DNA of 64,000 nucleotides from Tubulanus polymorphus (Eukaryota > Animalia > Nemertea), in assembly GCF_964204645.1 (NCBI RefSeq), contig NC_134030.1, positions 17,380,110-17,444,109 of the forward strand, written 5' to 3'. The translations under genes and the position numbers were made by a program. The notes under the pieces were generated by a model, which searched no databases, was not told the origin of the DNA, and worked only from the letters and a program-made list of their open reading frames with translations. Of this stretch, positions 5,201 to 56,447 are shown piece by piece (positions within the stretch are counted from its first letter, which is position 1; every line of letters starts with the position of its first letter).

Positions 5201-5452
5201 CTTTTGAGTCGGAAATACGTTGTGATCAATTATCATTCTTAAAATCATTCTATAACTGTTATACTAATTTTATTACAATACGGGATAAAGCAAAACAACA
5301 ATGTCTCCCCATACTTCAGTTTTTCTTTTTATAGAAAGTACAACCTGCTTACTACATTGTTTGTTGTCTGACACCCATTCATAACCACCGACCATACAGG
5401 AAATCAACATTACAAACATTTTTTAGCTACTACGAAATCTTGCTGCGGCTCA
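2285..5452 (-). mobile_element. Family A LTR element, truncated/degenerate copy 1 (deleted 5' LTR, accessory ORFs, gag)
   Basis: LTR start TGAGCCGCAGCAAGATTTCGTAG at 5452; homologs of ORF1-3 (3380-5070) and a frameshifted gag with CYQCHAPCHYARNC (2290-3331). Confidence 0.9.
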
Positions 5453-12003: not shown

Positions 12004-15000
12004 TTATTTTGAATTAAATTCCAGAGGACTGATGTTGCCTATGGAACGCTTATAAACCTTTTTCGAGGTTTCAACATCAACAACACGAATTAATCCATCT
12101 TTTCCTGGATAGACCGATTTGATTTCTCCCAATTTCCACTGCCGCCTTGGAAGATCCTTATCGATAACTAACACAATATCTTCGTTCGCAATGTTCTGAT
12201 TTGGAGACAACCATTTCTTTCTCGCGCTCAACTGGGGTAGAATCTCTTGGATCCACCTACCCCAAAACTGACGAACGACTTCCTGACTATGTCGCCACTG
12301 TTACGCAAATTGAACGGAATGCAGTCTACACTACTCGGCGCAGTATCTCCGCTGTCTCGTCCCACGATAAAATGATTTGGTGTCAACATAGGTTCATTTA
12401 TATCTTGACCAACCAACGGTCTCGAGTTCATTAGTCCTTCAACTAACGTAACGACTGTACGAAACTGCTCATCGTTTAATTCGCTACCTCCGATTATTGC
12501 TTTTATCGAACGCTTTGTGGCTTTAATCATTGTTTCAAATACACCACCGAAATATGGACTAACAGGTGGATTCCAAATCCAGTTTACTCCGTTATTCGCT
12601 AAGTTATTCGATATCTTATCTTGATCAAGACTATAAAGACAATCGACGAGCTCCTTCAACTCTGATTCTCCTGAAACGAAACTTCCACCGTTATCTGATA
12701 AGCATCTTTTAGGCCACCCACGCCTTGCCGCAAATCTTGAGAATGCGCAAAGGAACGAATCTGTATCCAGGCTATCAGTAGCTTCGAGATGTACCGCTCT
12801 GACTTGCAGATCGACCATCAAAAGGAGGTATCTTTTCGCCCTAGTACGACCTCTGCCCATCTTAACTGAAAACGGACCCGCGAAATCCAGACCGATTTCT
12901 GAAAACACATTCCATGATGGGTTTACTCGAATACTAGGCAGAGGAGCCATCTGTTGACTGAGACGCTTCTTTCGTAACCATCTAAGACAATACGCACAGC
13001 TGTTTAGGATTTTCTTAACCGCAGTCGACCCTTGTAAAATCAGAGATTTTCTACGAAGAGTGTTAAGAATATGTACTGGTCCAACACTATGTGCAGTATC
13101 ATCATGTGCCTGTACTATCAAAAGTCTTGTAATGTCACTCGACTTTGACAGAATTATCGGAAATTTTGTTTCTTCCGGTAATAATTCGCATCTTTCGACT
13201 CTCGTTCGCGATCGAAGAACTCCATTTTCGTCCAGGTATGGGTTCAACCCTGCGATTTTACTACTGAGTAATACATGTTTCTTCTTTTCTAATGCTACTA
13301 TTTCTTCACTGAAAGCTTCTCTTTGACCTACTTTCACTAACTCTACCTCCGCTGCTTTCAGTTCATCAGGAGACAATACACGATCATTATTTCTGCTCGA
13401 CTTACACGTTTTACAGTTCAATACAAATCGCTTAACCCACGCATAAATTCGAACCAGCGAAAACTTTCCTGTCCAGGATATACCACCGTTTTGTACGGGT
13501 AACCGTCTAGACCATCGACTAGGTTTCAAACTCCACACAAATTCATCGAGTGGAATATTCGTCATCGAATCATCATTTTCTTTGCGATTTTCTGTATTTT
13601 CGACATTTAAATCCAACGCACGAATCATAAACCCAGTAGGTTTTTCTGTGTCTGGATTTTCGACTGTTTCATGAGTAATATAATCCCTCCAATCTTTACG
13701 AATTTCATCCATTGCTTTGGATGATATTTTGATCTCTGTTTCTGGCCACGAGTCTGAGTTATCACATAGAAATTGTGGTCCGTGCCACCATAACTCTTCA
13801 TCTTTCAACCGAACTATACTGCAGCCTCTTGACGCGACATCTGCCGGATTACAGCTTGTTGGTACGTATCTCCACTGAGACGGAGAGGTAACTTCATGAA
13901 TTTTACCAACACGATTTGAAACAAAAGTCTTGTAGCTTCGACTTTCTCCTCCTAACCAGAACAAAACATCATAAGAGTCGCTCCAGAAAGTAGCTTCTTC
14001 TATTGGTAATTTCATACTTTACTTACTCGTCTTGTCAACTGCATACCAATTTCCGCAGCCATTAACTCTAGCTTAGGAATTGAAATACTCTTTGTTGGAG
14101 CCAACTTCGATTTTGCAGTAACTAGCGTGACAGTAACTGAACCATCTTCATATGTAGTTAACTGATACACTGCTGTGGAGTAAGCTCTAATCGAAGCATC
14201 ACCGAATGTATGTAAAGTCACCGATTTTACATCTTTTCGAGTCTTCAAACATCTTGGTATGTGGAGACATGAGATCAATGACAAATCTTCACACCACAAT
14301 TTCCATTTCTGACGTAATTGTGACGTAAGAATCTCATCCCATTCGAGTCCTTTCAGCCAAATTTCTTGCAGAATGATTTTCGCTTCAAGGACTTTAGGTG
14401 CTATAAGTCCCATTGGGTCAAATATCCGAGCGATATAACTGAGAACTTCACGTTTCGTTATACTGTCGTGGTATTCTGGTACGTTAACTTGATATTCAAA
14501 TGTGTCTGATTCTGCTTTCCAGTAGACACCCAGAACTTTGGTTTTTGGCAATACATTGTCTTGAATCTTCAATCTATCGGATTCCGGAATTTCTTCTAAG
14601 ACAGTTCTGTCATTTGACATCCATTTTCTATAATGAAATCCTCCATCTGTAGCCAAAGCCGTTAACTGTTGTCTGGTGGCTATGGCAACATCTGGGTCAT
14701 CCATTGAACAAATGGTGTCATCCATGTATGTTTTCGAATCAACTGCATCAGCTGCAAGGGGAAAACTTCTTTCTTCATTTTCGCATGAGTCTGCCATACA
14801 TACTGAGCACAGCAAGGAGAGTATGTTCCACCGAATACATGCCTTTTAAATTCATAGACTTCAATTTCACCGGATATCTGATTTTTCCAGAGATATCTAT
14901 GATACTTTCGATCTTCTGGCTTCATTTCTATTTGCAATACATCTGTGAAAGATCTGCACCCATAGCTTTGAGTCCACTTCTGAATGGACCTTTGAATTCG

Positions 15001-17322
15001 ATATAATCTTTGGTCAGGTATTCTGCGATTGTTTCCTCATACGATTTTTTGATGTCCGGATTGGAATCAATTTTCTTCATTAATAATTTAAGTCTGTTCA
15101 ACGCTACTGACTGATTATTTTCCAGATAGGGACTTTCATCCTTCCAAGGAACGCCAATTTCATAACGCTTGCCGTCGAACTTCAACGATTGCTCAAGCTT
15201 TTTCTGAGCTATTTCTTCGTCAACAGATAATTTGGATCTTGATTCATCGAGACCCGATTTTTCTTTCTCCCAAAACGCTTTTAGGGTAGAATCTAACGAA
15301 ATTTCTTCTTCATTCGGATTTTCACGATTAGCCAAAATCGTTTGACAGATTACATGAGTCTGTTTCTTCACGTTATGTGACTGATTTACATTGTCACCGA
15401 TACACGTCCAACCGAACGGACAAAGACGAGCGATTGGATCCGACGGATTTGGACCGCATATTTCTTTCAAACAGTACAGTAGATGTCTACAATCTTTTCC
15501 AAGTATTCCCTCAACTGTAGAATTAACACTAACATCTGGAAAGGGTATACCTTGTAGATGTGTCCACCGATTACGTATCTTCGACCATGCAATCGACACC
15601 ATACTGTCACAAACGTTATCCACTACGTAAAATCGCTGCGTGGCTAAGATTCTATCTGAACCGTTGTAATGTCTTATGTTTACATCACAAACTTTCGATT
15701 TCGTTGAAATTTCCGAACCATCGAATACTTTAACCGTCAAAGTTTCATTGTTATATTTCAAATTACGCATATGCGATACAGCGTGAGTACTGAGGTAACT
15801 AATGTCACTGCAATCATCTAGAAGAACTATTATCTGACGTTTATCATGACCATCACCAATATAGATAGGAAGAGTTCTCATTCCAACGTTCACTGAACTA
15901 TCTATAGCATATATCTGCTTCGCCATAAACGAACCATTCTTTTTTACGTCAGTTTCTAATGACGACTGGCTAGTTTCTTGATCTGTAGTTTCATCATCTT
16001 TATTTTCCCGATCATAAATTTCTGATTTCTTAAACTTCGGTCGATGCAACATCGAACTGTGTGTTAGAGTACAGCCAGATACTCCACACTGTCGTCTACT
16101 ATTACAATCCGAACCACGGTGATACGGACGTAAACATCGAAAACATAAACCAAGCCTTTTTGCAGTAGTCCAACGTTCATTTTTCATCTTTCGGAAACGG
16201 TCGCATTTTACTTCAGTGTGTTCCATTCCACACACGCTACATTTTACTGAATTACCCACGAAGGTACCACTACGTTTATTCGGTAATTTTCTATCAACAG
16301 TCTTCGAATCATTCGATACTCCATGAAGACCCTTAACTGCTTCACGAGCTTTCACCTTTCGCGCAACGACTTCTGAAAAACCATTCACTTAAGGAAGCAA
16401 GACCTTCGTCACATGATCTCGAGCTTAACCAGTCATAGTACTGTACAAGCAATATCTCAGGAATCTTTCGAGATACGATGCTATACCAAGCACCATCGCC
16501 GAGATCATCACCTTTTCCTCCAGCTTTCAATTTTGCTACTGCAACGACGAGATTATCCGACAATTTTTCTAATTTGTCGATATCATAAACTGACGGCTTT
16601 TCTGACTTTTCCAATTCATCTAAATATCCCTGTAGTTTCCTTCGTTCACCACCAAAAATCTGAACGAGTAACTTTTTTGCCGCTTCGTATTCCTCTAAGC
16701 TATAACCGAAACCCTTTATGGTATCAATAGCTTTTCCTTTCAACGAGTTCATCAACCGTAGCATTTTATTAGCTGCTGGTTCATCTGTACTGTCAACTAC
16801 GTTCACGAAGGCCATCCAGTAACTGTCGAATGTCAACTTATTTCCATCAAATACAGGAACTTTTATGCGTTCAAGTTTGGAAACAGCTGCCGTAACCGAC
16901 GATTCATCTTCTTCAAGGCTAATTCTCTTTCTTGGAGTGGACGTTTTCTTTTTACTCGTGTCATTAGATTCATTGACCGAACGATTCAATAACAGAGAGC
17001 GAGCCTTTTCTATTTCATATTCTGTTGAATTAAAAACCTCTTCTGCTTCAGCTTGAATATTCTGAACGCCTTTACTGTTATTTTCTGTTAAGTGGAGTTG
17101 TTCTAACTCATCTAGTACTGACAGGACTAAATCTCTTTTCTCATGAATATTGTCTATTATTTCTAATACGTGACTACCATCAGTATCTTCTTTACTTTCT
17201 AAGACCTTTGCTGTCAATTTTGTTAGGAGTCTACTCAAAGTGCTTTTTTCTATTTTCTTAAGCTTTTTCAGCTCACCTAAACCACGTTTTGAAGTATTTC
17301 CGGTTGCATCAACATCAGCCAT
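12004..17322 (-). pseudogene. BEL/Pao gag-pol polyprotein (DUF1759-type gag, three Cys/His knuckles, protease, partly deleted RT, Pao RNaseH, integrase), broken by several frameshifts
   Basis: CFRCL..H..C and C.V.GC...H..MLH; LLDDCS; YMDD; IFDPMG, TFGDAS, AKSKLAP, SIPKLELMAA; WSDS, NPADVASRG; GLDFAGP, SDNG, GGVFE. Confidence 0.95.
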
Positions 17323-21074: not shown

Positions 21075-22353
21075 TGATCCGCGGCAAGATTCCGTAGTAA
21101 CTAAAAAATGTTTGTAATGTTGGTTTTTGTTTGCGTTGGTGGTTTCTTTGTGGGTATCAGACAACAAACGATGTAGTCTAAAATTGTGCAAGTTGTTGTT
21201 TGATGCTTCGATCTATCAGTGCTGACAATAAATCAGCCTGGTGCAAAAATAATTCTTTCTCGGTTCTTGTGCTGCGATATCTGGCAAACATTCAGAATCA
21301 TTTTTAAACTTAAGAATAGACGGAACCGTAATTGGTTGGGTCGGAACAATGAGGTGCTTTGATAATGTGGTTTGTGCAGGGATCTCGCTGTTACTTCTTG
21401 ATACTCCCGACTACTTTCTATAAAAGGAAGAACCGGAAGTATAGGAAGACATTGTTGTTTTGCTTTATCCTGTATTATAATAGAATTAGTTAAATTATAA
21501 ATGAAAATTGGTATTATAAGTATAGAATGATTTTAGATTTGATAATTAATTACATTGTATTTCTGAATCAAAAGTTTACTATTGTTAATTGGAAAAAGAA
21601 ACGATGAGTTTGTTCCATAATCTAGGTGAAAACTAAGTTTTGAAAATATATCTAAATTAAGTATCCTGGATGTTAATTAAGGACAAGACCTTTATAATCG
21701 CTTAAGTTTTATGGAAGTTTAATTGTGGCAAATATCAATACTAGCTCTCTAAAGTTTCTGTTGGTGTACATGTCTGTTGGTAACTCGTAGAGAATAGCTG
21801 CTCTCTCAACAATGATAAGCAAGGAGTGAGTAAATCAAAGCGCGTCATGACAGGAGGGTTGAAAAGAAAAGTTACTTTGGCAAATCAGTTTCTCAAATAA
21901 TTTTAGATTAGCGAATCATTAAGGCTAATTCTACATGTCCAAAACCGTCATGACAGCTAGGTTGCTGCTCCTTGCCAAAAGTCGAACGGGAGAGTCGGCA
22001 TTCTAGGAATGCCGATCTTTTCTATAAAAGAGGCCCGCAGTCTTGAGAAAGCAGACCTACTAGGGACGCTCGTTAAGATACTTGAGATTTGGGTTGAAAT
22101 ACCAGAATTAAGACGGGTTACCAACAGTAGTGTACAATAGGAATTTAGAGTTAGGAATTGGACTGTGTGCTATCTGGAGATATTACTATTATCAAGGTAA
22201 ATAAAATCTATTTTATTTTTATTATATTCAATCAGAATTTCGGCATTTTAGTTTGATTATTTGGGTTTGTGCACGGACACGTTCTCTCGCCAGGGACCGA
22301 TCTTTACGTTTTTATATTCAACGATTAAGGAGAGGATTGTGACCGGTGTATCA
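21075..22353 (+). repeat. 5' LTR of family A copy 2
   Basis: Direct repeat of 28973-30251. Confidence 0.97.
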
Positions 22354-22354
22354 T

Positions 22355-22372
22355 TGGTGCCGAAACCCGGGA
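22355..22372 (+). promoter_or_regulatory. Primer binding site, tRNA-Phe
   Basis: TGGTGCCGAAACCCGGGA, 1 nt after the LTR end. Confidence 0.95.
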
Positions 22373-22430
22373 AATCAATAATCTTCGGTTTACGATAAAC
22401 TTTTTACATTAATTGTTTAGTTTTGTTCAA

Positions 22431-22958
22431 ATGGTACATATTTCCGTATGCTCCCACTGTGGTGCGAGGAACGCATTCTCTAAGAAGCGCCGCACTACAA
22501 CCAACTCAACATACGAAAAGAAATTGTGGGGGTCGAACCCACCTAATACCAAACCGTTTGAAATTCCGGTCGAGTTTCGGGAACCATTGTGGGATTTGAA
22601 CCCACTGCCCCCTCCGGTCGACCCTGTTGAGACACTGCGGGATTCGAACCCCAGAGGTGCACAGCCATTTGAGATCCCGGAAGAGTATCGGGAGCCGTTG
22701 TGGGATTCGAACCCACTGCTGACTTTGGCCGTATCTGCTGAGCCTTTACGGGATTCTAACCCGACCGCCACACAGCGCGAAGCTTCGATCACCTCGAGGG
22801 ATTCGAACCCTCTCGAACGCCGGCAAAGGGTAAAGCCAGTGAAAGTGCCCGAGAAATTCGACCCATTTTGGGCACATTTCTTTCGCGATTTTGCAAACCC
22901 GGCCGAGTTGTTCTTTGGTGATAAAGACGCTGACGGCTATTTCCTTTGTCCAGCATAG
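22431..22958 (+). CDS. Accessory ORF1: CxxC + six (W/R)DSNP repeats + conserved aromatic C-terminus
   Basis: Open frame from ATG 22431; C-terminus FWAHFF.DFANPAELFFGDKDADGYFLCP is also present in copy 1 (~4735-4825). Confidence 0.6.
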   Translation: MVHISVCSHCGARNAFSKKRRTTTNSTYEKKLWGSNPPNTKPFEIPVEFREPLWDLNPLPPPVDPVETLRDSNPRGAQPFEIPEEYREPLWDSNPLLTLAVSAEPLRDSNPTATQREASITSRDSNPLERRQRVKPVKVPEKFDPFWAHFFRDFANPAELFFGDKDADGYFLCPA

Positions 22959-23052
22959 ACTAAGGGGGTCTTATAGTACCAGTCAATTGTTAACTTTATG
23001 ATTGCCTGATTGTTATTTGTGGAAAATATTTTGTGTTGTTTGTGATTGATAC

Positions 23053-23493
23053 ATGTCAGCTGGGTTGAGGTGTGGTTACTGTGGGGCAACGGTTTACAAG
23101 ACGCACACGCTTGCCCCAGTCCCCAAGTCTAGTTGGGAGGTACCAGCTCATTTAAGGGAGCCACTGTGGGATTCGAACCCACTCAGCACCAAGGGTACCA
23201 CTAACAACAGAGCTGCTGAACAGCCACTGTGGGATTCGAACCCACTTAGCATCAAGGGTATTACCAACGACAGAGCTGTTGAACAGCCACTGTGGGATTC
23301 AAACCCACTCAGCACAAAGGGTACCAATAACGACGGAGCGGTCGGACAGACTCTGAGGGATTCGAACCCTCCACCCAGCGGGCTTAATATTTATACGTCT
23401 ACCTGGGATCAGGGGGATTTCAGTTTATGTGCTATCCCTGACCACAACGTATTGTTGGCTGATAAGTCGCGAATATACAGCTACTTTGATTAA
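23053..23493 (+). CDS. Accessory ORF2: CxxC + four (W/R)DSNP repeats (63-bp period), paralog of ORF1
   Basis: ORF track; N-terminus conserved in copy 1 (MSVGLKCGHCGATVYKTHTLAPVPKSTWEVPAHLREPLWDSNP). Confidence 0.65.
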   Translation: MSAGLRCGYCGATVYKTHTLAPVPKSSWEVPAHLREPLWDSNPLSTKGTTNNRAAEQPLWDSNPLSIKGITNDRAVEQPLWDSNPLSTKGTNNDGAVGQTLRDSNPPPSGLNIYTSTWDQGDFSLCAIPDHNVLLADKSRIYSYFD

Positions 23494-23585
23494 ATTGGGG
23501 TTATTTATTTAAATTATAATAAGCAATTAAACTCGAATTGTATAATTTTCTTTTTGGTGATTATTATTTGTAAGTTAGTACGTTA

Positions 23586-24407
23586 ATGTCGGGGTCAATT
23601 ACGGTGAGGTGCACAAACAAACGTCGTAGCACTGGTTATTGGAGTACACTACCCCGAAAAAGGTGTCTCACTACTGTGAGTATAGCACCCGCAACACCTA
23701 CCATCACAACTGCTTCCCCTGGGACCAGTGCTGGGACTCCAACTTCTCAGTCTTCAGACTTTGACTTTTTGGATAGTTGTTTGTATTGTGAGGGCCCAAC
23801 GTTAGCGGTTTTTCAGGACCAGGTAAATTGTACTTGCTCGTTTTCAGTGACCCCTTCTCCGCCCCTAAGTCCTTCGGGTACGGATTCGATCCGAGATAGC
23901 TCGATACGGACTGGTGAACCTTTCACACGGCCGCCGTCATCAGCTGGATCAACCGGTTCCAGCGACTCAAGCTTTTCGTGCTGTTGTTCGGTGCCGCCTG
24001 GTTCACCTATAGGGTTTGATCAGTTCGACTTAGAGCAACCGGCAGACCTGTCTGCAACTCGATCTTTAAACAGACCATTAGCAATTGTTACGCCTGTAGC
24101 GGGCCAACTGTTGGGCGGACATTTGGGCGCACCTGTCCAAAGTTTTCCACTAGACCTGTCCTTAGGTGCGTCTGCGGTTGACCAACCGTTGGATCTGTCG
24201 CCCAGCGGGGGTTTAGGCCGATTTTCGGAAAGTCAGTCTGCCCTTGGCCCTTGCACCTCGTGGACTTTTGAGGAGATTGATGACATTCTTTCGTCATTTT
24301 TAAGGGAAGAGTTTACGGTGGAGGAGGTTGCCCGTACTTGGGAAAACCTACTTTGTTGGGCTGATCGCCAGGATCAGGTTTGGAATTTAAAAGTAGCATC
24401 ATCGTAG
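23586..24407 (+). CDS. Accessory ORF3: S/P/T-rich protein with three PxDLS motifs and an acidic C-terminal helix
   Basis: 273-aa ORF; PADLS, PLDLS, PLDLS; homolog in copy 1 (3380-4179). Confidence 0.7.
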   Translation: MSGSITVRCTNKRRSTGYWSTLPRKRCLTTVSIAPATPTITTASPGTSAGTPTSQSSDFDFLDSCLYCEGPTLAVFQDQVNCTCSFSVTPSPPLSPSGTDSIRDSSIRTGEPFTRPPSSAGSTGSSDSSFSCCCSVPPGSPIGFDQFDLEQPADLSATRSLNRPLAIVTPVAGQLLGGHLGAPVQSFPLDLSLGASAVDQPLDLSPSGGLGRFSESQSALGPCTSWTFEEIDDILSSFLREEFTVEEVARTWENLLCWADRQDQVWNLKVASS

Positions 24408-24441
24408 GGATAATAATAATTTGATTACTCTGGTTTAGAAA

Positions 24442-25539
24442 ATGGCAACTAGAAGCGGGACAACATACGGGTCGGACGATGCGGGTGGCTTGCAGGGGCA
24501 AACCTCTACAGGAGGGAACCCACAGGGTCACCCCCCAATTAGCAATGACACGGTTTTAGAGGCCCTCTCGGGCTTACGCGAACAGGTGGACACGGCCACC
24601 GCGTTTATGAACTTCTCCATGCTCCCGAAATTTACAGGACGAGACAGTCAGTGCGTCTCTGATTGGTTCAGAGGGTTCAATCGTTTGGCCGATCTGAGAG
24701 GCTGGGACAAAAATGCCAAAAAGAAACAGTTAGATTGGTTTTTGGCTGGCCCAGCCCTAGTTCTATTCAATGACCTCCGCATTGATCAGGCGACCGATTC
24801 GACCGGCACAAAAATTACCACTCCCTGGGAAAATATTGTCCGTGCGTTTTGCGCGCAATTTAGCCCTACCTCGTGGGCTTTGGACAAGGAGTCGGCTTTG
24901 ACGACGATGCGACAGGGGGAGACACAACCGGTCGATAGGTTTGCGGAAGAGATTGATCGTGTGGCCTCGAGTTTGAAATTTTCGGACCACCAGAAAAATA
25001 TGTTACTAATTAACAACTCACGCCCTGACATCTCTGTCTACCTGTTGTCACAGCGTCCGACGACATTTAGGGATGCATGGGAGGCAGCCAGAATGGCGGA
25101 GCATATCGAACAACGTAAAGCTCTGTCGTCTCCCAAGGTATCGCAAATTGGGACCGAACCAAATAAAGCGATGGGTGACGTTATGGCTGAATTACGGGAC
25201 ATGTTCCGCCAAATTATGGACATCCAGAAGTCTACCCGTACTCAGCGGAATGATAGAGCCACATTTTATAGCGAAAGCCGCCCGTCACAAAGGTCACAAG
25301 ATGGCCAGGTGGTGTGCTTTCAATGTCACGCCCCTGGTCATTACGCCAGGAATTGCCCGACGTGGCGTTACGACCAACAAAGGTCACCAAACCGGGACGC
25401 ATTTCAGCGTGATAATCGCCGTCCCCAAAATGCTAGTAGGGGTCACTTTCGGTCACAGAATCTTGGGCGTGATTCCCAGCGGGTTAATCGAACATTTGGC
25501 CATGGAAACGACCGGAGACCTCATCCTATGGACCGATAA
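24442..25539 (+). CDS. gag: Gag (Gypsy-type capsid + CCHC zinc knuckle)
   Basis: LPKFTG..SDWFRGF..A...GW....KK..L...L.G.A; MRQGETQPVDRF; CFQCHAPGHYARNC. Confidence 0.93.
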   Translation: MATRSGTTYGSDDAGGLQGQTSTGGNPQGHPPISNDTVLEALSGLREQVDTATAFMNFSMLPKFTGRDSQCVSDWFRGFNRLADLRGWDKNAKKKQLDWFLAGPALVLFNDLRIDQATDSTGTKITTPWENIVRAFCAQFSPTSWALDKESALTTMRQGETQPVDRFAEEIDRVASSLKFSDHQKNMLLINNSRPDISVYLLSQRPTTFRDAWEAARMAEHIEQRKALSSPKVSQIGTEPNKAMGDVMAELRDMFRQIMDIQKSTRTQRNDRATFYSESRPSQRSQDGQVVCFQCHAPGHYARNCPTWRYDQQRSPNRDAFQRDNRRPQNASRGHFRSQNLGRDSQRVNRTFGHGNDRRPHPMDR

Positions 25540-25549
25540 GGGTGGGGTC
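25503..25549 (+). promoter_or_regulatory. Predicted -1 ribosomal frameshift cassette
   Basis: T GGA AAC (GGGAAAC in the other copies), 7-nt spacer, 11-bp stem 25517-25549. Confidence 0.7.
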
Positions 25550-25672
25550 ACGCAATGAATGGTCAACTGAGCCCTCGCCGGACTCGTTAATAAGGAGTGA
25601 TTATTGGTGGGATGACACATATTCGGGTTATCATAGTTATGATGATGACAGTCCGGTAATTGATGATTATAT

Positions 25673-25716
<44 letters not shown>

Positions 25717-26759
25717 ATTATTATTTAGAGGACGATAGGGATGATATATTTGACATGTCATTTGATCAGGGCGACATGCTAGCTGACTCATTTTCTCTTT
25801 ATTTTGAACCTGAGGGGAACTGTAATGCAGATTACTTAGATGACACTGAACCTTTACATTTAGATAAGTTTATTGATTATCACACTCCTTCATGGGGTGC
25901 CGATGACGTTTATGACATTCAAGATCGTAACTTTGGGGATAGCTGGAGGGACAATTCTCAGTTGTCGTTAGATGGAAATTTTTATATGGATCAGGGATCC
26001 AATTTTGAGGACATCTGGAAGGACAATTCCCAGTTGTCGGCTACTTACGGGCATATAAATAGACACAGGAGGGTTACGTTTAGCGATCCGGTTAAATTGC
26101 AGGAGGTACGTGCTGATATGGCGTGCTCAGGTGACAATATTTGTATTGATAGGTCACACCCTAGAGGGGTTAATGGTCCGACGGATTCGGCAGAAGATGA
26201 CCTTTTTAGAGATAGGAAGTCTCATTTAGATTGTCACGAAGGCGCTTTTGATCAGTATAGGTACCCAGCAACCTCCGAATCAGCAATACAATGTGATCTT
26301 GTGTCATCAGATTCAAGTAGTAGTAATAATTCACGATCGGAATGTCTTAATGATCAGAGTAATATGGAAACTATTTTGTCAAAGATATCTAGTCAGGAGT
26401 CAATGTCGGAGAATTTGTGTCACTCGTTTGAAAGAGGACAGAACTTTCCTGTCACCTCAAATGCCAGCAGTTTTCACCATCCAGTTAGGGATGGCATGTC
26501 CCATGAACAGGACAGAGGTCAAGTTGTCCTCACGTCTAAACCGAATATGCAAATCAACGAAAAGGTTGGGATAGGAGATTCGAACTCCGATTGTCAACCA
26601 ACTGTTCACTGTCAGGAACAATTTCCACCTGTTACGATGACTTTAGGTAACACGTCAACCAACGACATAGGGTCCTTTTCCAGTCAGAACAACACTATTG
26701 GACAGGAGGCTTATTCCCCGTCAAATCATGGCAACTGCCGCCAACCGAGTGACTGGTAG
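25542..26759 (+). CDS. Acidic, low-complexity ORF with a poly-Asp (GAT)n tract, in the -1 frame of gag
   Basis: 405-aa ORF; homologs at 43699-44820 and ~7080-7330. Confidence 0.7.
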
Positions 26760-27519
26760 TCATTCAGGGACACCGTTAAACATTTTGATTGATACGGGTG
26801 CCGATATTTCTGTAGTGTCAAACAATTACTTCATCAATCATCCTCAGATATCGAATGGCCCTTTGCAGGAGGGACAATTTCAGTCCGCCCGTGGGGTAGA
26901 TGGTACTAAGTTTTATTTAAAAGGTGTTATTTCCGTAGATTTTGTATTAGGAAATTTGGACGTGTCACATTCTATGTACGTGGTGGATGGAGTCACCTCG
27001 GACTTCATTCTCGGAGTTGATTTCCTGGAACGAAACCAGGCAGTTATCGATTATGCTAAAAAGGCTCTCTTGTTGCCAGGCGCCGACATAATTTACTTTA
27101 GTAATGATGTCATCTTGGGGAAATCTTCGTCGGTTAAAGTCACGCGTATGACTGTTATTCCCCCTTCATGCGATGTCACCGTAGACCGTAAGTGGTTAAT
27201 TGACAAGTCTCAGTCATCGATTGCAGCCTTTGAGCCTGTACATGATTTGAGAATGCGTGATCGCATGAGCGCAAGGTCAGTTGTTAGCGTCATGCCATCA
27301 AGGCATCGGTTTCGAGTCACGAACCCTACGTCACGACACGTCACCCTCTTTGAAGATACGTGTCGTAGTGATTCGTGGACAGATGGGTGGTCACTTGACC
27401 GATCACTCAAAACAGAGGCGAAGTCAGGACAGCTTCCTCGGCCACCGGAGGTGTCTATCACACATGTGGAAGACCCTCAGACGTCAGACAAAATTTGTAA
27501 GTATAATCGAATTATTTAG
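26698..27519 (+). CDS. Retropepsin aspartic protease plus linker; no downstream RT
   Basis: LIDTGADISV and DFILGVDFL motifs. Confidence 0.9.
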   Translation: MDRRLIPRQIMATAANRVTGSHSGTPLNILIDTGADISVVSNNYFINHPQISNGPLQEGQFQSARGVDGTKFYLKGVISVDFVLGNLDVSHSMYVVDGVTSDFILGVDFLERNQAVIDYAKKALLLPGADIIYFSNDVILGKSSSVKVTRMTVIPPSCDVTVDRKWLIDKSQSSIAAFEPVHDLRMRDRMSARSVVSVMPSRHRFRVTNPTSRHVTLFEDTCRSDSWTDGWSLDRSLKTEAKSGQLPRPPEVSITHVEDPQTSDKICKYNRII

Positions 27520-28972
27520 AGTTTGGATCAAGATGCATACGTCCTATTGAAAATTATGAATTGTATACGGTAAGCGTCTCTTCAGTAAGTTATCGAAATA
27601 TAATTACTTAAGTGTTGTAAAACTGAAGTATATATAACGCATTGTTGCCAATGAGTTAACTCCTGATCTGGGTTTAATCTAATACAGGAGATAAAGACAA
27701 CTATAAATAAAAGTGAATAATAGCTTGATTGTCGTGATATTGGTTTTTTTTTGCTGAAATATCACTAGTCTCTAGGGTTTATTATCTGTAGTCTGAATGG
27801 ATGTCATTAATTGTCAGTTAGAAAAGAAAGAGTTATGATATGTTTGAATAATCTCTGTATTATTATGATATTAATTGTAGGATACCCGTATCGGATGTGT
27901 TGGAATGAGACCGCCGAAGATACGATAGCACTTAGATGGAAGAATGCCTTCTTCTGTCAACCGCAATAGATGTTGATGGGTACCCCCCTGATAGTGACCA
28001 TATGGAGATGGGGACTTGTTGGGAGGTATCCTGAAACTCTATTCGATGCAACTGATAGTTGAAAAACCAGCAACTGGTATGCTCTGGCCGAGATGGGTGA
28101 TATTAATTCACCGATTCGTCAATTAACGAGGAAAAAGGAACAACTATATACAGCCTACAACAACGATCTAGGGCGTTGCCGTTTCAACGGGATGGAATTA
28201 TGCTCGATGATTAGTCATGCGATTCTGGCCATTGTTAGTGGTGTTTGTCACTCTCGAAGACCTGTTATATACTCACAAACTTAAGTGATGAAGGGTGGAC
28301 AAAGACACCTGGCCAATGCGATACGAAATATGAAGAAAAGTGATAATTTCCGTAGACATTTTAGCGGAGTAAAGCCGAGTGTGTTCAAGATGGCTCCCGT
28401 GTAGTTACATTAACATTCGATGGAATGTTGTTCGCTCAAGCCGTAAGATGCGAATACATTACTGTTCCGTTTCTATATTAACTGTGGAGAAAAGACTCCG
28501 ATATAGTAACCGTAGTACTATAGCGTCTATGAATAGCGAGCATTTGCCGTACTATCAACGTAGCAGTACGCGCTGCGAGGAACTGCGGTGGATGACGTCA
28601 TTCGTCCGTCCATGACGTACTTTGTTGTGTCTGGTAGCTGTTGCGTCACTTCGCGGTAAATTCTAAACTCAAACTGTGAACTGTTTTGTGCTTAACTTTC
28701 GACTGTTTAGTGTGCGGGGACAGCGGTCTCGAATGAACTTTTTTCCGATTGGGTATCCAGAACTTTAAATGCGGTTTTATGATAAACTATATCCTGAACT
28801 TTAATACGCGTTTGTTGTGTTGAACTTTTAAACAGTTACTCGTTGCATGAATTGTTTTTTTTTGTAATTGATGTTCTTTTTCAGGATCTGTCTAGGGAAG
28901 TTTCAGCGCGATTTTCATGAGTCAGTCTAAATTCAAAATTTCGGGACGAAATTTAAGCTGGATGGGGAGTGA

Positions 28973-30251
28973 TGATCCGCAGCAAGATTCCGTAGTAACT
29001 AAAAAATGTTTGTAATGTTGGTTTTTGTTTGCGTTGGTGGTTTCTTTATGGGTATCAGACAACAAACGATGTAGTCTAAAATTGTGCAAGTTGTTGTTTG
29101 ATGCTTTGATCTATCAGCGCTGACAATAAATCAGCCTGGTGCAAAAATAATTCTTTCTCGGTTCTTGTGCTGCGATATCTGGCAAACATTCAGAATCATT
29201 TTTAAACTTAAGAATAGACGGAACCGTAATTGGTTGGGTCGGAACAATGAGGTGCTTTGATAATGTGGTTTGTGCAGGGATCTCGCTGTTACTTCTTGAT
29301 ACTCCCGACTACTTTCTATAAAAGGAAGAACCGGAGGTATAGGAAGACATTGTTGTTTTGCTTTATCCTGTATTATAATAGAATTAGTTAAATTATAAAT
29401 GAAAATTGGTATAATAAGTATAGAATGATTTTAGATTTGATAATTAATTACATTGTATTTCTGAATCAAAAGTTTACTATTGTTAATTGGAAAAAGAAAC
29501 GATGAGTTTGTTCCATAATCTAGGTGAAAACTAAGTTTTGAAAATATATCTAAATTAAGTATCCTGGATGTTAATTAAGGACAAGACCTTCATAATCGCT
29601 TAAGTTTTATGGAAGTTTAATTGTGGCAAATATCAATACTAGCTCTCTAAAGTTTCTGTTGGTGTACATGTCTGTTGGTAACTCGTAGAGAATAGCTGCT
29701 CTCTCAACAATGATAAGCAAGGAGTGAGTAAATCGAAGCGCGTCATGACAGGAGGGTTGAAAAGAAAAGTTACTTTGGCAAATCAGTTTCTCAAATAATT
29801 TTAGATTAGCGAATCATTAAGGCTAATTCTACATGTCCAAAACCGTCATGACAGCTAGGTTGCTGCTCCTTGCCAAAAGTCGAACGGGAGAGTCGGCATT
29901 CTAGGAATGCCGATCTTTTCTATAAAAGAGGCCCGCAGTCTTGAGAAAGCAGACCTACTAGGGACGCTCGTTAAGATACTTGAGATTTGGGTTGAAATAC
30001 CAGAATTAAGACGGGTTACCAACAGTAGTGTACAATAGGAATTTAGAGTTAGGAATTGGACTGTGTGCTATCTGGAGATATTACTATTATCAAGGTAAAT
30101 AAAATCTATTTTATTATTATTATATTCAATCAGAATTTCGGCATTTTAGTTTGATTATTTGGGTTTGTGCACGGACACGTTCTCTCGCCAGGGACCGATC
30201 TTTACGTTTTTATATTCAACGATTAAGGAGAGGATTGTGACCGGTGTATCA
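28973..30251 (+). repeat. 3' LTR of family A copy 2
   Basis: Direct repeat of the 5' LTR, followed by TSD ATAC. Confidence 0.97.
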
Positions 30252-31370: not shown

Positions 31371-34184
31371 AATATAGCTGCTAAGCAGCGATGACGGGTT
31401 TTCTGCAGAGCCATTCAGAATGATGGGAATTGTAGTAAATTGAAATGCCGATACATAGAATGAAATGCATTGACAGATTCGAACCTAATATGCAACCACT
31501 GTGTAAAAGGTCAAATATGATTCAGCTTTGAAACCGAACATACGCGGGCGTACAATCAACAAATATGAATTTATTTGACCAGGCATTTTTTTGGCATTCA
31601 AACATCATGATACTGTTTTATCACCATGCTTAACTAAGGGTCCAGGGACACCATGCCCACTTGGGAAGTGGTTTCAAATGCTCAACAATCTAACAATTTC
31701 GATATTCAACGCCCCCTGGTGACCATATACAAAAACAAATGACCTTGAAACTCACCACAATCATAGAACATGTCATATGCAACGATTTTGTAATTGATTG
31801 TGATAACAAAATATTCTCGTTACCAATTTAGTATGGTAATACTAAGTTATTCTACAATTCAACGCCCCCTGGTGCCCATATTCAAAACCCAATGACCTTG
31901 AAACTCGCCACAATCATAGAACATGCCATGAACTACAACTTTGCAATTGATGATGTTAACAAAATATGCCTAGGCACCAATATAATAAGGAAATAAGTTA
32001 TTCTACTATTCAATGCCCCCCCCCTGGTGACCATATAGAATAACTAATGTCGTTTGAACAGACCACAATCATAGGCGATGTCATGAGCTACAACTTTGCA
32101 ATTGATTGTGGTAACAAAATATGCATTGGTACAAATATAATATAGAAATACTAAGATATTATATTATTCAACGCCCCTTGGTGGCCATATAAAAACACTA
32201 ATGACCTTGAAACTCACCACAATCATAGAAAACCTTATAATCTACAACTTTCTAATTCATTGCGGTACCAAATATGCTAAGGTATCAATATAATGTCGAA
32301 AAACTTTTTCCCACCGAATGAGTACCGATAACACCAAGATGGCCGCCAATTGCGTCATAATTGGCTGATCAAATATACCTACCTCAGGTATAAACCATCC
32401 CTTTCCAAAGAATACCCATCAGCAATTGCAATGACAAATGGCAAATCAGTAGGAAGCTAGAGGACTCAGAATTCGGACCTAAATTGACAATTTTGGGCAC
32501 TAAAAAGGTCATAGGACGGCCATCTGTAGTCCGATCGACCCACTTTTGTTATTCTTATGGGCCCTGGGGAGATTCAAATATATAGGAAAGATCAAGGTAA
32601 TTGATCAAAGCGTCTTCAAAATTTCCCTCAAAAAGTTCAAAAACGTATAAAAAGTGCTGATTTTGGCAAACAACAATGGCTGCCAGTCGGCCATCTTGAT
32701 TCTGACAGGGCCAGTTTTTGGACTGAAGATGTGTCTAAGGTAGATACATGTGTAACCCAAATATCAAGACTTTACATAGAAGCGTCTTCAAAACTTCCCA
32801 AAATAACTGGATTCCGTCTACGGACGGACGTACGACGGACGAAAATTGAACGCAATAGCTCGTTGGGACTAAAGTCCCATGTGGGCTAAAAATGGATCTG
32901 TCCTATTATGAACTCATCTTTAGCACCTGCTGAGTCGATAGATTGAGTGAATTTACAGATAAAAACGTATTATGATTTGGAATAGATTTAAGAAGATAAT
33001 CTATTTATTGAAATATTTGAATAAATACATATATTGTAGTGTAGATTCAATCAATAAATTATGAATGGATTTGGTCTGGGTTTCCGCCTGATGTTGATTT
33101 TGGCCTTTATGGAATTACAAATTCTAAAGTGATAAACAATTTATACCTGCAACATGTGTGTAAATCAAACCTATCCCACTAGTTGCGTGTGTTTCCTAAT
33201 AAACGGGAGAGTTACTCTTGATCTGAGTTATTAGAAAAATAATGTTCATATATTTATAGAAATTTATTGCCTTTTTGAAAATTCTATAATAATATTTGTT
33301 CTGTCCTAATTTTTATGACCGTATGAACCAATGATATGCTATGTAAATATGATGTAATAAAATAAATTTGAATTTGAATTAAATTTGAATATGAGAATCA
33401 AGCATAACTTGTGTCTTTTCAACTTGTCTTACTTGTCTCTTGTTAACAGTTCCAGAGTTTCGATTACAATCAAATCCAAATTGGCTAAAAAGTATATAAG
33501 ACTAAATGAAATGAACTGTTAGTCACCGCAAAGGTTATGGCTGTTCGAATATCACGGATACCGGATACCGGACACCTAAATACCGGATACCGGATATTCG
33601 AGATTGCGGAGTATATAGCGCATCGGGTCTAAGGAGTCATTTTTTCAAAAGTAAAACGCCCCCCTGGTGGGTGAACGGGGTCTCCAATCAAAGATCCTTA
33701 GACTTACCTTGAGGTACCTGTGTTCCGTACAACTCACAAAAGTTTCAAGTAAATCCGTCAGGGAATATTGTAATGCTAGCAGAATATAGTCATCCAGGCT
33801 CTCGCGTATAGATAGCTGCATTCATTAGCTCTATCTAGGGAAGTTACTGCAAGGATGCTATTGCTTGTATGCGGCATAAACAAGGCTATAAAAATTCCTC
33901 AGTTGCGTTCACTCGAGACTGGCCACATTCAGTGCGCCTCATATATAGTAGCATAGATAAAAAATACTAAAAAACTACAGATCTAGTACACAGCTCTATC
34001 ACTGCTTATGGGACACTGGCACAAACACACGTACTGACGCGCTGTGGGAATGACACATAGGCAATACACATATGTAGATGCATATCGGGCTTAAATTTCG
34101 ATGTTTAGAGGCTCACAGTGAGTAAACAGTGAAAGTAAGTTGCAGTTGTTTATATCCTTTCAGTAAGATCCAGTGTGAAAAAGA

Positions 34185-34905: not shown

Positions 34906-35186
34906 ATTCCAGTGTTATGTCGATCGTGTTAATCGCTTTGCTTCAGTTGAAAGAATCAGACCGTATATGGTATGTGTTGAGTTATGTTCTCAATTTACTC
35001 ATCTTAGTGTGAGAGATTGTTTATTGTTTATATACCGGGTGGATGCTGCATGTAACCAAGACACACATCTGTTTGTAATTATTCTTGCATCTCTTTGTAT
35101 TGTGGTTAAATAAAGATTAGTACGAGTCAGATAGTCAACGAAAGAAGACGTGTTATAGTTTCGCTGCTCAAGGATTTTCCCCCATC

Positions 35187-38100
35187 ATGGAAGGACAAAA
35201 CTCAACAGGTTATGGGCCCAGGGCACCAGCTGGACGCTATGGTCGACTTTATTACGATGGGGATGAAAGAAAATACGAACAATGGGAGGCAAAGTTTTTG
35301 GCTTAAATGAAAATACAAAAACTTAAAGCGGTAATTACCCAAGAAGCGGAAATTGATGATACGGACCTGGATTTAGTCGACAAAAATGAACAGGCGTACG
35401 CAGAACTCATACAGCTACTTGACGACAGGAGTCTGAGCCTGGTAATGCGTGAAGCTGCAGATGACAGTCGAAAAGCATTAGCGATTCTGCGACGTCATTA
35501 CCAAAATGAGGGAAAACCGAGGATCATTTCTCTTTATACGGAACTGACCTCACTAGTCATGAAGCCAAGTGAAAGTGTGACGGACTATATAATCCGCGCA
35601 GAAACGGCAGCAACAGCTTTAAAAACTGCCAAGGAGAACATAAGCGATAGCTTATTAATCGCGACGGTCCTAAAAGGTTTGGCGGATAGTTATAAACCTT
35701 TTGTGGCGATAATCACGCAGAAAGACGATGCCCAAACGTTCTTGGACTTTAAAAACGCCCTCAGAAGATTTGAGGAGACCGAAAAAGCGAGGAAAGATAC
35801 GGCAGAATCATCAGATGATCATGTGATGAAAAACAGTTTCCCCGCCAAAAATGTCAAGGACAGTCAAAATAGCGGGAATAGTAGTGGCCCTAAGTGTTTC
35901 AGATGTGGAAAGATTGGGCATTACAAAAAGGACTGCTACGCAAAATATTGTTCTACATGTAAGTCCAATACCCATAGTGATGAAAATTGTCGCGCACAAA
36001 ACCGCGGGAAAAACAACGGTCGAAAAGATAGATTTCATCGAGCGAAAGATGACGCCCGATCATCAGATGACGACGGTAACGAACATTCATTCTCATTTCT
36101 ATATAAAGCTGGGTGTGATCATAGAAAAATTCCTGATGTGAAATCTCAAAATATGCACATCCCGGTGAATGAAGATGCCCTGAAATCGTGTTCGAGCCGA
36201 AAGAAGAATTCAGATGATATGTTGGTGGATTGTGGAGCTACGTCTCATATACTTACGGACTTTGGATTATTCACGAAATTTAATGAAACATTTGTGCCGG
36301 AAAAACACACAATTGAACTGGCTAATGGAGAGCGCTCAACAAATGTGGCCGAAAAATGTGGAGATGCAGTAATTAATTTGAAAAACTCTGACGGAATAAA
36401 CGTGAAATTCGAACTCAAAGATGCTCTGTATGTCCCGAGTTATTCGCAGGACATTCTATCCGTTCGCGCTGTGACAAAAGAAGGAGCAACAGTCACATTC
36501 CGTCCCGAGAATGCAAATCTCAAGTTCAAAGGTAACATTTTTAACATTCATATGTCAGATAGATTGTATTATCTTAGTAGTGTGGATCAAAATGATTGTG
36601 ATTATGTTAGCATCACTCGTGACCTTCAAAGTTGGCACGAGGTCTTAGGTCATTGTAATTATGAAGATGTAATTTCATTAGAGCATGTAGTCGATGGTAT
36701 GAAAATCAAAGGTGTCACAAAAATCCCCGATGGTTGTATTGTGTGTACTATGGGAAAGCAAACGTGTGGTCGGAGTAGAGAGGCAAGGGCTAAATCCAAA
36801 GCTCCCCTAGATTTAGTGCATACTGATTTGGCAGGGCCAATTGAACCGGTATCCACTGAGGGATTCAAGTATGCGATTTCCTTTACTGACGACTATTCAG
36901 GGGCTGTGTCTGTATATTTCCTAAAAGCAAAAAGTAACACGACTGAGGCTACGGAAAAATTCCTGGCTGACATGGCACCCTTTGGTAAGGTAAAAAGGTT
37001 GAGATCAGACAGAGGGTCAGAATTTCTGTCTAATTCATTCAAGTCACTTATGAGTAGAAATCGCATAAGACACGATACCAGCGCCCCCTATAGTCCTCAT
37101 CAAAATGGTGTTAGTGAAAGGCATTGGAGAACACTATTCTCTATGGGTAGATGCCTGTTATTTCAGTCTGAGCTGCCAAAAGAAATGTGGCCGTATGCAG
37201 TTATGGCGGCAGGTTATATTAGATACAGGTGCTACAATAACCGGTTGAAAAAGACACCATTTCAAGCAGTCACAGGTAGAAAACCTAATGTGTCAAATAT
37301 GCAATCTTTTGGGTGCAGGTGTTTTGCCTACCAACAAAAGAAAACCAAGTTAGACTCAAGATGTGTTGAAGGTATTTTTGTAGGATATGATAAAAACAGC
37401 CCATCATATCCGGTGTATTTTCCTGAGACAAACAAAGTTCTGAGGTACAGGGTTGCGAAGTTTCACACCAAGAAGTTTGTAGAACAACAAACACAAACAG
37501 GTGCACATGATGATGATGTTTCTTTATGTGAGTTTCCAATAATCAAATCTGACACAAATAGCAGCTCAAATGGTTCCAAAGTTCAACCACAATTAACAAC
37601 TGTCAGTAACCAAGGGACCAGTAACTCACATGATGAAACTGATGAGTCGAGATACCCCAGGCGTAAGAGAAAGCCTCCTGCTTATCTCAATGACTATATA
37701 AGTGATTCAGATTTAGAAAGTTCATGTAACGATGACCATATGTTATTTGTATCGGACTCAAATGTAGATTATTTGTGTAAGACTAAAGTTCACCCTGTGA
37801 ACTATAGTGAGGCAATAGCATCCCCTGAGGCACAGCAGTGGCACGAGGCAATGAAGGAAGAGATTAAATCCTTAAAAGAGAATGACACATACTCTTTATG
37901 TAAATTGCCAGAGGGTAAACATGCTGTGGGGGGTAGATGGGTTTACACAGTCAAAACAAAACCTGATGGATCAGAGCTGTATAAGGCAAGATATGTAGCC
38001 AAGGGCTATAGTCAAATTGAAGGGGTTGATTACAAGGAGACTTTTTCTCCTACTGCTAAACTCACATCTGTTAGAATCCTTATACAATTAGCAGCTCAAA

Positions 38101-39328
38101 ACAATTTGAAACTTGAACAAATGGATGTTAAAACAGCATACTTGAACGCCCCTATCGACTGTGAGTTGTACATGGAACAGCCAGAGGGCTTCAGTGTAAA
38201 ATCAAAAAGTGGTGATAAGTTGTATTGTAAGCTCAACAAATCTATGTATGGTCTAAAACAAAGCGGCAGAAATTGGAATAACTTGCTCCATGACCATTTG
38301 ATAGACCATGGGTTTGACCAAGGTTTAGTTGACCAATGCCTGTATATAAAATATGTAAATAATGAAATGGTGATTATGTTAGTATGGGTCGATGACGTCC
38401 TAATTGGTGCAAGTAGAGATGATTTAATGTTTAAAACTAAACAAATGCTGAGCGACAGATTTAAAATGAAAGACCTGGGGAATATCTCCTGGTTCTTAGG
38501 CATTGAATTCGAACAGGGTGACGGTGAAATAACAATGAGTCAGAAAATGTACATAAACAAAATCCTTGAAAATTCCAAATGTCTGATTGCAAACCAAGAA
38601 AGACCCCATGTGAACAAAAACTGTCATTTAATGAAAATGCGGAGCGATACGATGCTAAGAAATATAGGGAGTGCATTGGTAGTTTGATTTATGCAATGAC
38701 TTGTACTAGACCAGATATTAGCTATGTAGTAACCAAACTATCACAATATTTATCAAACCCAACAGTTGAACACTGGACGGCAGCAAAGCATGTGCTCCGA
38801 TATTTGAAAGGTACTAGTCATTACAAATTAGTGTATAGAAAGGATGAAAATGGGTTAAAACTCTCAGGTTATAGCGATGCAGACTGGGCATCATCTGCTG
38901 ATGATAGGAAGAGTGTTACGGGTTATTGTTTCAGTTTATCTGACCAGAGTGCATTGATATCCTGGAAATGTAGGAAACAGCCTACGGTAGCTTTGTCTTC
39001 GTGCGAATCAGAATATATGGCTTTAGCGGCGGCCACTAAAGAAGCTCTGTACTTATCCCAATTTCTAATTGAAATTGACCCCAACGGTAGCTACGCCCCA
39101 GTCACATTGTACGAGGACAACCAAGGCACTATCGCACTGGCCAAAAACCCCGTCAATCATCAGCGCTCTAAACATATCGACATACGATATCATTTTATTC
39201 TTACAGAGCAAAACAATGGCAAAATTGAAAGCATGTATTGTCCTACGGAACGAATGATAGCTGATGTTCTGACAAAGCCAGCAACAGATTTTAAGTTGAG
39301 AGAGTTTCATCCAAATATTTTTGGTTAG
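35187..39328 (+). pseudogene. Copia gag-PR-IN-RT-RH polyprotein with one nonsense codon (35304-06) and one frameshift (~38570)
   Basis: CFRCGKIGH..C; VDCGATSH; WHEVLGH, HTDLAGP, RSDRGSEF, QNGVSER; KARYVAKGY, MDVKTAYL, YGLKQSGR, WVDD; YSDADWA, EDNQG, KHIDIRYH. Confidence 0.97.
35208..35221 (+). promoter_or_regulatory. Copia-type PBS for the 5'-half fragment of tRNAi-Met
   Basis: GGTTATGGGCCCAG directly after the LTR, as in Drosophila copia. Confidence 0.9.
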
Positions 39329-56285: not shown

Positions 56286-56447
56286 TATATCTTCGCATGA
56301 CTTCATGGCGCAGATTTGTCTCTATCACAGCTTTATCACTACGCGTAACTAAACACAGTCTTTTTGGCTGGGATTGTCACCCATACTCTCCATATGATTG
56401 TGCGACAAAACAATGTTCAGCCAATGTTCTACGATTGTACATCCTCA

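Follow-up and report, generated by a model that had tools for sequence, protein, structure and literature searches.

A leader-encoded protein with clustered PxDLS motifs in a nemertean LTR retrotransposon, a candidate ligand of the co-repressor CtBP

Does a retrotransposon of the nemertean Tubulanus polymorphus encode, between its 5′ long terminal repeat (LTR) and gag, a protein that mimics the ligands of the co-repressor CtBP? The question is raised by an uninterrupted 273-codon open reading frame, ORF3 (23586–24407, + strand), in a window of 64,000 nucleotides (nt) of this genome (NCBI RefSeq assembly GCF_964204645.1, contig NC_134030.1, positions 17,380,110 to 17,444,109 of the forward strand; all coordinates below are those of the window). 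A sequence-only reading of the window had suggested that this frame is retrotransposon-encoded and carries three CtBP-binding motifs. ORF3 lies in copy 2 of an element family that is represented in the window by two further copies: copy 1, which holds an ORF3 pseudogene, and copy 3, which has no ORF3. The best explanation of ORF3 appears to be a genuine, lineage-restricted accessory gene of the retrotransposon. The combined statement that it is translated and that its product binds CtBP in the nucleus, mainly as a decoy, is tentative, and we hold it at somewhat less than an even chance.

ORF3 starts with an ATG and encodes an orphan acidic protein of 273 amino acids (29 kDa, isoelectric point 4.5). 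Three P-x-D-L-S pentapeptides were found in it, at exactly the coordinates claimed by the sequence-only reading: PADLS at residue 152 (motif 1, 24039–24053), PLDLS at residue 188 (motif 2, 24147–24161) and PLDLS at residue 201 (motif 3, 24186–24200), all on the + strand and all within 54 residues. The amino acid composition of ORF3 predicts 0.022 such pentapeptides, and 1 of 200,000 shuffled ORF3 sequences reached three. Translated in all six frames (approximately 128,000 codons), the whole window contained the pattern seven times, and six of these occurrences were in the two copies of ORF3. The cluster is not a product of chance, even if many motif classes and ORFs are generously allowed for. 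Most partners of CtBP dock into its N-terminal cleft through the consensus PxDLS, in which x is usually hydrophobic (PMC5536941). The core of this class was matched twice by PLDLS, while PADLS has Ala at position x.

The coding sequences of the two PLDLS motifs differed at 5 of 15 nt, and every difference was silent. The 24-nt flanks of the three motifs were alike at chance level, with modest similarity only between motifs 1 and 3. A DNA-level repeat or recent duplication as the source of the motifs was rejected, as the flanks were alike only at chance level and the variation fell on silent positions. Taken together, the silent differences and the dissimilar flanks point to retention at the peptide level. 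An upstream resemblance to the RRT class of CtBP motifs, RRTGXPPXL (PMC5536941), had also been suggested, but residues 107–115 contain only Arg-Thr-Gly-x-Pro, i.e. four of the seven fixed positions (the initial Arg, the second Pro and the final Leu are missing), and this part of the proposal was abandoned. A plant EAR-motif reading was rejected as well: motif 2 alone agrees with Leu-x-Leu-x-Leu, and the element resides in an animal. The sequence Pro-Pro-Leu-Ser-Pro at residues 92–96 (23859–23873), kept in copy 1, agrees with PxLxP, a loose pattern of MYND-domain ligands that is also present in E1A; the match is probably due to chance, the pattern being very degenerate and the region Pro-rich.

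The tests of ORF3 conservation rest on two copies only, one of which is the pseudogene of copy 1 (3340–4205, − strand), and have little power. The two copies shared 74% amino acid identity overall. As had been claimed, copy 1 keeps all three motifs at the DNA level, spread over two frames on the − strand (PVDLS at 3720–3734, PLDLS at 3608–3622 and at 3569–3583), and the reported synonymous change in motif 3 was identified as G>A at the Pro codon (position 24188). Conservation was patchy: residues 5–28, 187–208 and 241–256 formed perfectly conserved runs of 24, 22 and 16 amino acids, respectively. With random placement of the changes, the probabilities were 0.03 for the longest run, 0.0013 for the second-longest and 0.006 for the third. 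The 22-residue run (24144–24209, + strand) contains both PLDLS motifs and had two nt changes, both silent; the 24-residue run (23598–23669, + strand) is the basic N-terminal block and had four, again silent. All eight nt differences inside the three blocks were in third positions and silent.

Whether the motifs are better conserved than their surroundings, a check put forward by the sequence-only reading, was examined against random triples of 5-residue windows. Such triples equalled the retention of 12 of 12 key residues in 4% of trials (p = 0.04), that of all 15 motif residues in 10% (p = 0.10) and that of the nucleotides in 17% (p = 0.17), again with two copies. The comparison thus tends to favour the motifs, although its power is small. 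The sole change among the 15 residues was the Ala/Val exchange at x of motif 1, and the stretch surrounding this motif was variable, with 8 differences in 42 nt.

The ORF3 protein has a modular architecture. Its N-terminus is basic, as described before, with a net charge of +6.5 in the first 30 residues, and the block at residues 5–28 resembles a bipartite nuclear localization signal (NLS): KRR, nine residues and RKR, starting at residue 12, match the bipartite pattern (a pattern match only) and are fully kept in copy 1. Residues 31–145 are rich in Ser, Thr, Pro and Gly, with a Cys-x2-Cys-x13-Cys-x-Cys cluster at residues 65–84 and a Cys triplet, and are followed by the region carrying the three motifs (residues 146–215). 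The structure was predicted with a single-sequence AlphaFold2 model, the mean predicted local distance difference test score (pLDDT) of which was 40. Residues 141–223 had 10-residue block means of 25–35 and no secondary structure in this prediction, in agreement with the claim that the motifs lie in a disordered, Ser/Pro-rich protein. Towards the C-terminus, an acidic amphipathic helical hairpin was predicted at residues 228–261 (24267–24368, + strand; pLDDT 62–68), and its core, residues 241–256, is the same in copy 1. Pfam revealed no recognisable DNA-binding or integrase-binding domain. No hydrophobic or transmembrane segment was detected (maximum Kyte–Doolittle value 1.14), and a transmembrane, Env-like or fusogen role was rejected on this basis.

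Several properties of ORF3 bear on its status as a gene. The ratio of non-synonymous to synonymous divergence (dN/dS) relative to copy 1 was 0.59 in frame (bootstrap confidence interval 0.39–0.96), while the two alternative frames gave 0.94 and 0.88. Between copies 1 and 2, nucleotide identity was 88% in ORF3 and 69–70% in the zones of the two preceding leader ORFs, ORF1 and ORF2, which makes ORF3 the best-conserved segment of the leader; similarity detectable by BLAST ended 25 nt upstream of the ORF3 ATG. A codon-usage score trained on the other retroelement genes of the window was positive only in the ORF3 frame, although this mostly reflects the absence of stop codons.

Relatives of ORF3 were sought widely. 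Pfam gave no family at E ≤ 0.01, a word-indexed search of 5.8 billion proteins gave no match, and a full HMMER scan of 1.84 billion representative proteins gave neither a match nor a donor gene. The sequences of the PDB yielded a chance match only (E = 0.78), and scans of metagenome and prokaryote-genome loci and an exact-sequence look-up were empty, as were the searches for relatives of gag. The label 'E1A-like', which had been given to ORF3, can therefore be kept as an analogy and not as homology: there was no Pfam match, no homologue among the 1.84 billion representatives and no LxCxE motif. Full-text literature searches in which CtBP or PLDLS was paired with either retrotransposon or transposable element brought up no account of a CtBP ligand encoded by such an element.

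The proposal that ORF3 is retrotransposon-encoded was borne out, since LTRs, target-site duplication, primer-binding site, gag and protease were all found around it. The 5′ LTR of copy 2 (21075–22353, + strand) is 1279 bp long, is bounded by TG...CA and contains a TATA-like box at 22023 and AATAAA at 22200. The primer-binding site (22355–22372, + strand) lies one base after the LTR end, starts with TGG and is complementary to a tRNA 3′ end, presumably resembling that of tRNA-Phe. Three ORFs follow in the leader, and ORF3, the third, is thus located between the 5′ LTR and gag, not downstream of pol. ORF1 (22413–22958, + strand; first ATG at 22431, 175 amino acids) consists of 111-nt tandem repeats with hairpins resembling an antisense tRNA T-arm, and ORF2 (23053–23493, + strand; 146 amino acids) of tandem repeats, 63 nt long, in which this T-arm-like unit recurs; neither had a Pfam match. 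ORF2 and ORF3 are separated by an AT-rich spacer (23494–23585). The gag gene (24442–25539, + strand; 365 amino acids) encodes Retrotrans_gag (PF03732) and a CCHC zinc knuckle (zf-CCHC). It is followed by ORF5 (25542–26759, + strand; 405 amino acids), which lies between gag and protease and has a poly-Asp run and no known domain, and by an ORF for a retroviral-type aspartyl protease (RVP-type, identified with Pfam; 26698–27519, + strand). A perfect (TGA)x13 tract at 25676–25715 encodes the 13-Asp run of ORF5, and the dN/dS of ORF5 relative to copy 3 was 0.61.

The 3′ internal region (27520–28972, + strand; 1.45 kb) has no long ORF and ends in a purine-rich tract directly before the 3′ LTR (28973–30251, + strand), after which the target-site duplication ATAC follows. 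The two LTRs were 99.3% identical (nine differences in a self-BLAST) and the 4-bp duplication was intact; copy 2 is therefore a young insertion. No domain signal of reverse transcriptase (RT), RNase H or integrase was found in 27520–28972, and copy 3 has the same architecture; the 3′ internal region is common to both full-length copies (21075–30251 and 40863–48175). The element is best described as a non-autonomous Ty3/gypsy-like LTR retrotransposon with gag and protease, the clade of which is not assignable from a sequence that has no RT. As neither full-length copy encodes RT, RNase H or integrase, the family must be mobilised in trans. No matching autonomous partner was present in the window.

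The other members of the family differ in their state. Copy 1 (approximately 2295–5341, − strand) is 5′-truncated and decayed. Its ORF3 has in-frame indels of +9, −6 and +3 nt, frameshifting indels of −14, +1 and −4 nt and premature in-frame stops, and owing to the frameshifts motif 1 is not in the frame that motifs 2 and 3 share. Copy 3 (40863–48175) has an RT-less layout like that of copy 2, with a leader of only 435 bp. One more LTR, solo or fragmentary (59209–60268, − strand), also belongs to the family and shared 78–87% identity with its other LTRs.

The leader of copy 2 (22354–24441; 2.1 kb) was strongly depleted of ATG triplets. Its + strand contained 7, in contrast to 28.0 ± 4.1 expected from dinucleotide-preserving shuffles (n = 1000), of which none had so few. 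The non-repetitive stretch from ORF3 to gag contained 2 ATG compared with 8.9 expected (2 of 1000 shuffles), and the leader of copy 1 (3340–5067, − strand) contained 5 compared with 24.8 expected. The depletion was strand-specific and was not seen in gag, in ORF5 and the protease, in the 3′ region or in the short leader of copy 3. In the 5′ LTR the last ATG was at 22009, just ahead of the TATA-like box. The transcript of the element would probably start about 30 nt past this box (near 22050), and its leader, 2.4 kb in length, would be nearly free of AUG.

One of the seven leader ATGs is the start of ORF3. All seven had a pyrimidine at −3, which is a weak context, while the gag ATG had A at −3 and G at +4, an optimal one. 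These contexts suggest that the leader is shaped for leaky scanning, in which a share of the ribosomes would initiate at ORF3, while the others would go on to the gag AUG. ORF3 as an N-terminal extension of gag was rejected: the frames differ, three more in-frame stops occur within four codons after the ORF3 stop, and a fusion is also excluded by a stop in the gag frame 6 nt before the gag ATG.

The T-arm-like hairpin, 17 nt long, corresponds to a tRNA T-arm in reverse complement. It occurred eight times in copy 2 (22557–22762 and 23159–23369), twice in copy 3 (42286–42438) and twice in copy 1 (4484–4850), and nowhere else in the window. A 101-nt 'tRNA-Arg(CCG)' called by ARAGORN at 42338–42438 was rejected; it looks like two misread T-arm-like units, and Rfam found no tRNA there. 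It is pure speculation that these repeats might serve as extra primer-like sites or as a sponge for tRNA fragments. Even if CtBP were not bound by ORF3, a leader of 2 kb that is AUG-depleted, contains several ORFs and consists in part of antisense tRNA-like repeats would be unusual.

What could a protein of this kind do for the element? Its reading as a CtBP ligand, put forward by the sequence-only reading, is supported by the motif cluster, the predicted disorder, the NLS-like N-terminus and the conserved run with the twin PLDLS (p = 0.0013), whereas the RRT motif and the homology to E1A did not hold. The host is a metazoan and should therefore have CtBP. In Drosophila ovaries, knock-down of CtBP led to the overexpression of 13 transposon families and activated promoters in transposon terminal repeats (PMC7061269). 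Also in Drosophila, CtBP is recruited to transposon-rich loci by fast-evolving PxDLS-type motifs, which sibling species have gained or lost (PMC12992792). As CtBP represses transposon terminal-repeat promoters in the fly, a decoy would benefit a retrotransposon.

The anatomy of the element, the enrichment of the motifs, their patchily conserved setting and the AUG depletion are shown by the sequence; that ORF3 is translated, reaches the nucleus, binds CtBP and acts in a given direction is inferred. The protein would enter the nucleus by means of its putative NLS, where its motifs would fill the PxDLS-binding clefts of host CtBP. Since CtBP is dimeric or tetrameric, two or three motifs clustered in 54 disordered residues could bind multivalently and with avidity. 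ORF3 would then compete with the host factors that recruit CtBP to LTR promoters, and the element and its relatives would be freed from transcriptional repression, by motif mimicry in the style of E1A. As ORF3 combines motifs with a putative import signal and no DNA-binding domain was recognised in it, a soluble competitor is the simplest reading. In its most specific form, that of a retrotransposon-encoded anti-silencing factor, a disordered nuclear protein whose three PxDLS mimics titrate CtBP off LTR promoters, the proposal is unlikely by our own estimate.

A number of observations count against the decoy reading. Position x of motif 1, usually hydrophobic, is Ala (Val in copy 1), and at the nucleotide level the motifs were not conserved above random windows in the comparison of two copies, one of them dead. 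Copy 1 is a frameshifted pseudogene, and ORF3 was absent from copy 3 and from a fourth gag fragment (7340–8019); its absence from copy 3 implies that it is dispensable for the propagation of the family. ORF3 is also far less constrained than gag, the dN/dS of which was 0.19 relative to copy 1 and 0.18 relative to copy 3. For the same pair of copies (23586–25539 compared with 2293–4180), the synonymous divergence (pS) was 0.156 in ORF3 and 0.36 in gag. This low value may reflect either a nucleotide- or RNA-level constraint on the leader, or a younger shared ancestry, with recombination moving ORF3 between lineages. The ORF3 AUG is the sixth in the leader and comes after two long ORFs, so that translation may be inefficient. 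Finally, the absence of relatives from every database searched leaves ORF3 without comparative support.

Three other explanations have to be weighed against the decoy reading. ORF3 might be translated and real, with P-x-D-L-S repeats that serve another partner or are structural, which would make CtBP irrelevant; we consider this somewhat unlikely. The evidence for coding and for modular constraint agrees with it as well as with a decoy, matches to short linear motifs (SLiMs) are often false positives, and motif 1 is non-canonical. The real function could reside in the Cys cluster at residues 65–84 and the C-terminal hairpin, and binding might occur through the Gln-Pro-x-Asp-Leu-Ser context shared by the motifs or the Leu-x-Leu-x-Leu of motif 2. 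However, PLDLS is the exact optimal ligand of CtBP and is present twice in a disordered and perfectly conserved block of 22 residues. We know of no other class of partner for it. A CtBP recruiter instead of a decoy, by which the element would limit itself at its own DNA or ribonucleoprotein or tether its pre-integration complex to CtBP-marked chromatin, would explain the same motifs, and the conserved Cys cluster and the C-terminal hairpin could provide the second interaction surface of such a bridge. Chromatin tethering by element-encoded proteins is established for other LTR elements. We nevertheless regard a recruiter as very unlikely, because ORF3 has no recognisable DNA-binding or integrase-binding domain, the family has no integrase of its own, and self-repression is hard to select in a non-autonomous element.

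ORF3 could also be no functional protein at all, being part of a long structured leader RNA or a passenger captured from a host gene, e.g. from the CtBP-interaction region of a repressor. Its open frame and motifs would in that case be relics, kept only through constraint on the leader RNA or through a recent common ancestry of this segment in the two copies. Its pS, less than half that of gag, is expected from nucleotide constraint or a recent recombination tract, the upper bound of its dN/dS is 0.96, its start codon has a weak context and copy 3 does without it; leader ORF1 and ORF2, moreover, are open merely because they consist of repeats. It is hard to reconcile with this explanation that a frame of 273 codons, unlikely by chance, begins at one of the seven leader ATGs, that the three conserved blocks had only silent changes and that the twin PLDLS are written with different codons. 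The ATG depletion also runs on through ORF3, as if this region were scanned by ribosomes, and no donor gene was found among the 1.84 billion representative proteins. On balance, a non-functional ORF3 is distinctly unlikely.

Animal transposons are usually viewed as passive targets of silencing. To our knowledge, element-encoded counter-defence has been documented in plants and hardly at all in animals. If the decoy reading of ORF3 is true, this would be the first animal transposable element known to us to use co-repressor motif mimicry, and the three CtBP-type ligands of ORF3 would extend viral short-motif mimicry to endogenous retroelements. ORF3 would also be a concrete antagonist of the kind able to bring about the fast rewiring of CtBP recruitment in the Drosophila PIWI-interacting RNA (piRNA) pathway. 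The fast turnover of CtBP-recruiting motifs is usually read as a sign of conflict, and ORF3 would be a candidate for the opposing side.

The window contained further mobile elements and repeats. A BEL/Pao-type element (12228–17322, − strand), of a kind that is confined to Metazoa and marks the host as an animal, has separate but overlapping ORFs for a DUF1759 gag, Peptidase_A17 and an integrase. A Copia-type element (34974–39882) has an intact gag-pol of 1126 amino acids (35307–38687) and 235-bp LTRs that were 98.7% identical, and the nearest relatives of its polyprotein (approximately 50–54% identity) came from a mollusc, an octocoral and a fish, and from host-contaminated samples. Tandem arrays of an approximately 153-bp repeat were located at 31700–32900, 53160–54440 and 55300–56290, in both orientations and with 77–89% identity. 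A PIF/Harbinger-like transposase fragment (52657–53154, − strand) adjoins one of these arrays.

Judged by sequence homology, ORF3 belongs to none of the known systems that it recalls, namely viral CtBP mimics, host repressors, short ORFs (sORFs) of MDG1-group elements and the VANC proteins. Host proteins that recruit CtBP through multiple PxDLS motifs include KLF3, KLF8 and KLF12 (PMC5536941) and Drosophila simulans Bootlegger and D. erecta Deadlock (PMC12992792). The repressors of the ZEB and Snail families belong here as well. In these proteins, as in ORF3, SLiMs of the PxDLS type are clustered in disordered regions. The gain and loss of such motifs over short evolutionary times rewires CtBP recruitment at transposon-related loci (PMC12992792). 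Unlike these recruiters, which are host genes with DNA- or chromatin-binding domains, ORF3 is owned by the element and has no recognisable DNA-binding domain.

In its position, ORF3 resembles the sORFs of insect LTR retrotransposons of the MDG1 group (412, Stalker2), in which sORF1 and sORF2 occupy the interval from the 5′ LTR to gag in the sense orientation and are expressed from the element transcript (10.1101/2025.03.14.642691). Those proteins comprise approximately 110 and 70 amino acids, and sORF2 is membrane fusogen-like, whereas the ORF3 protein, compared with them by description only, has 273 amino acids, is acidic and has no hydrophobic segment. In its proposed role it recalls VANC of Arabidopsis VANDAL transposons, an element-encoded protein that counteracts host silencing of its own family (PMC5735166). 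Both are transposon-encoded accessory proteins, the anti-silencing role of ORF3 being proposed only. VANC differs in that it belongs to a plant DNA transposon and has no homology to ORF3; it acts through sequence-specific binding to DNA and the loss of DNA methylation, and co-repressor motif mimicry plays no part.

The closest analogy is that with the CtBP mimics of DNA viruses, although ORF3 shares no sequence homology with them, has three motifs in place of their one or two, lacks the LxCxE motif of the E1A type and is a leader ORF of a retrotransposon instead of a viral early gene. CtBP was itself discovered as a partner of E1A, and PLDLS is the version of the motif found in E1A (PMC7061269, PMC5536941). 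Like adenovirus E1A, Epstein–Barr virus EBNA3A and EBNA3C and Marek's disease virus Meq, ORF3 is encoded by a parasite and predicted to be largely disordered, and it combines PLDLS with a putative nuclear-import signal. By analogy, the presumed mode of action would be the one that these viral proteins have in common, namely competitive occupation of the CtBP cleft.

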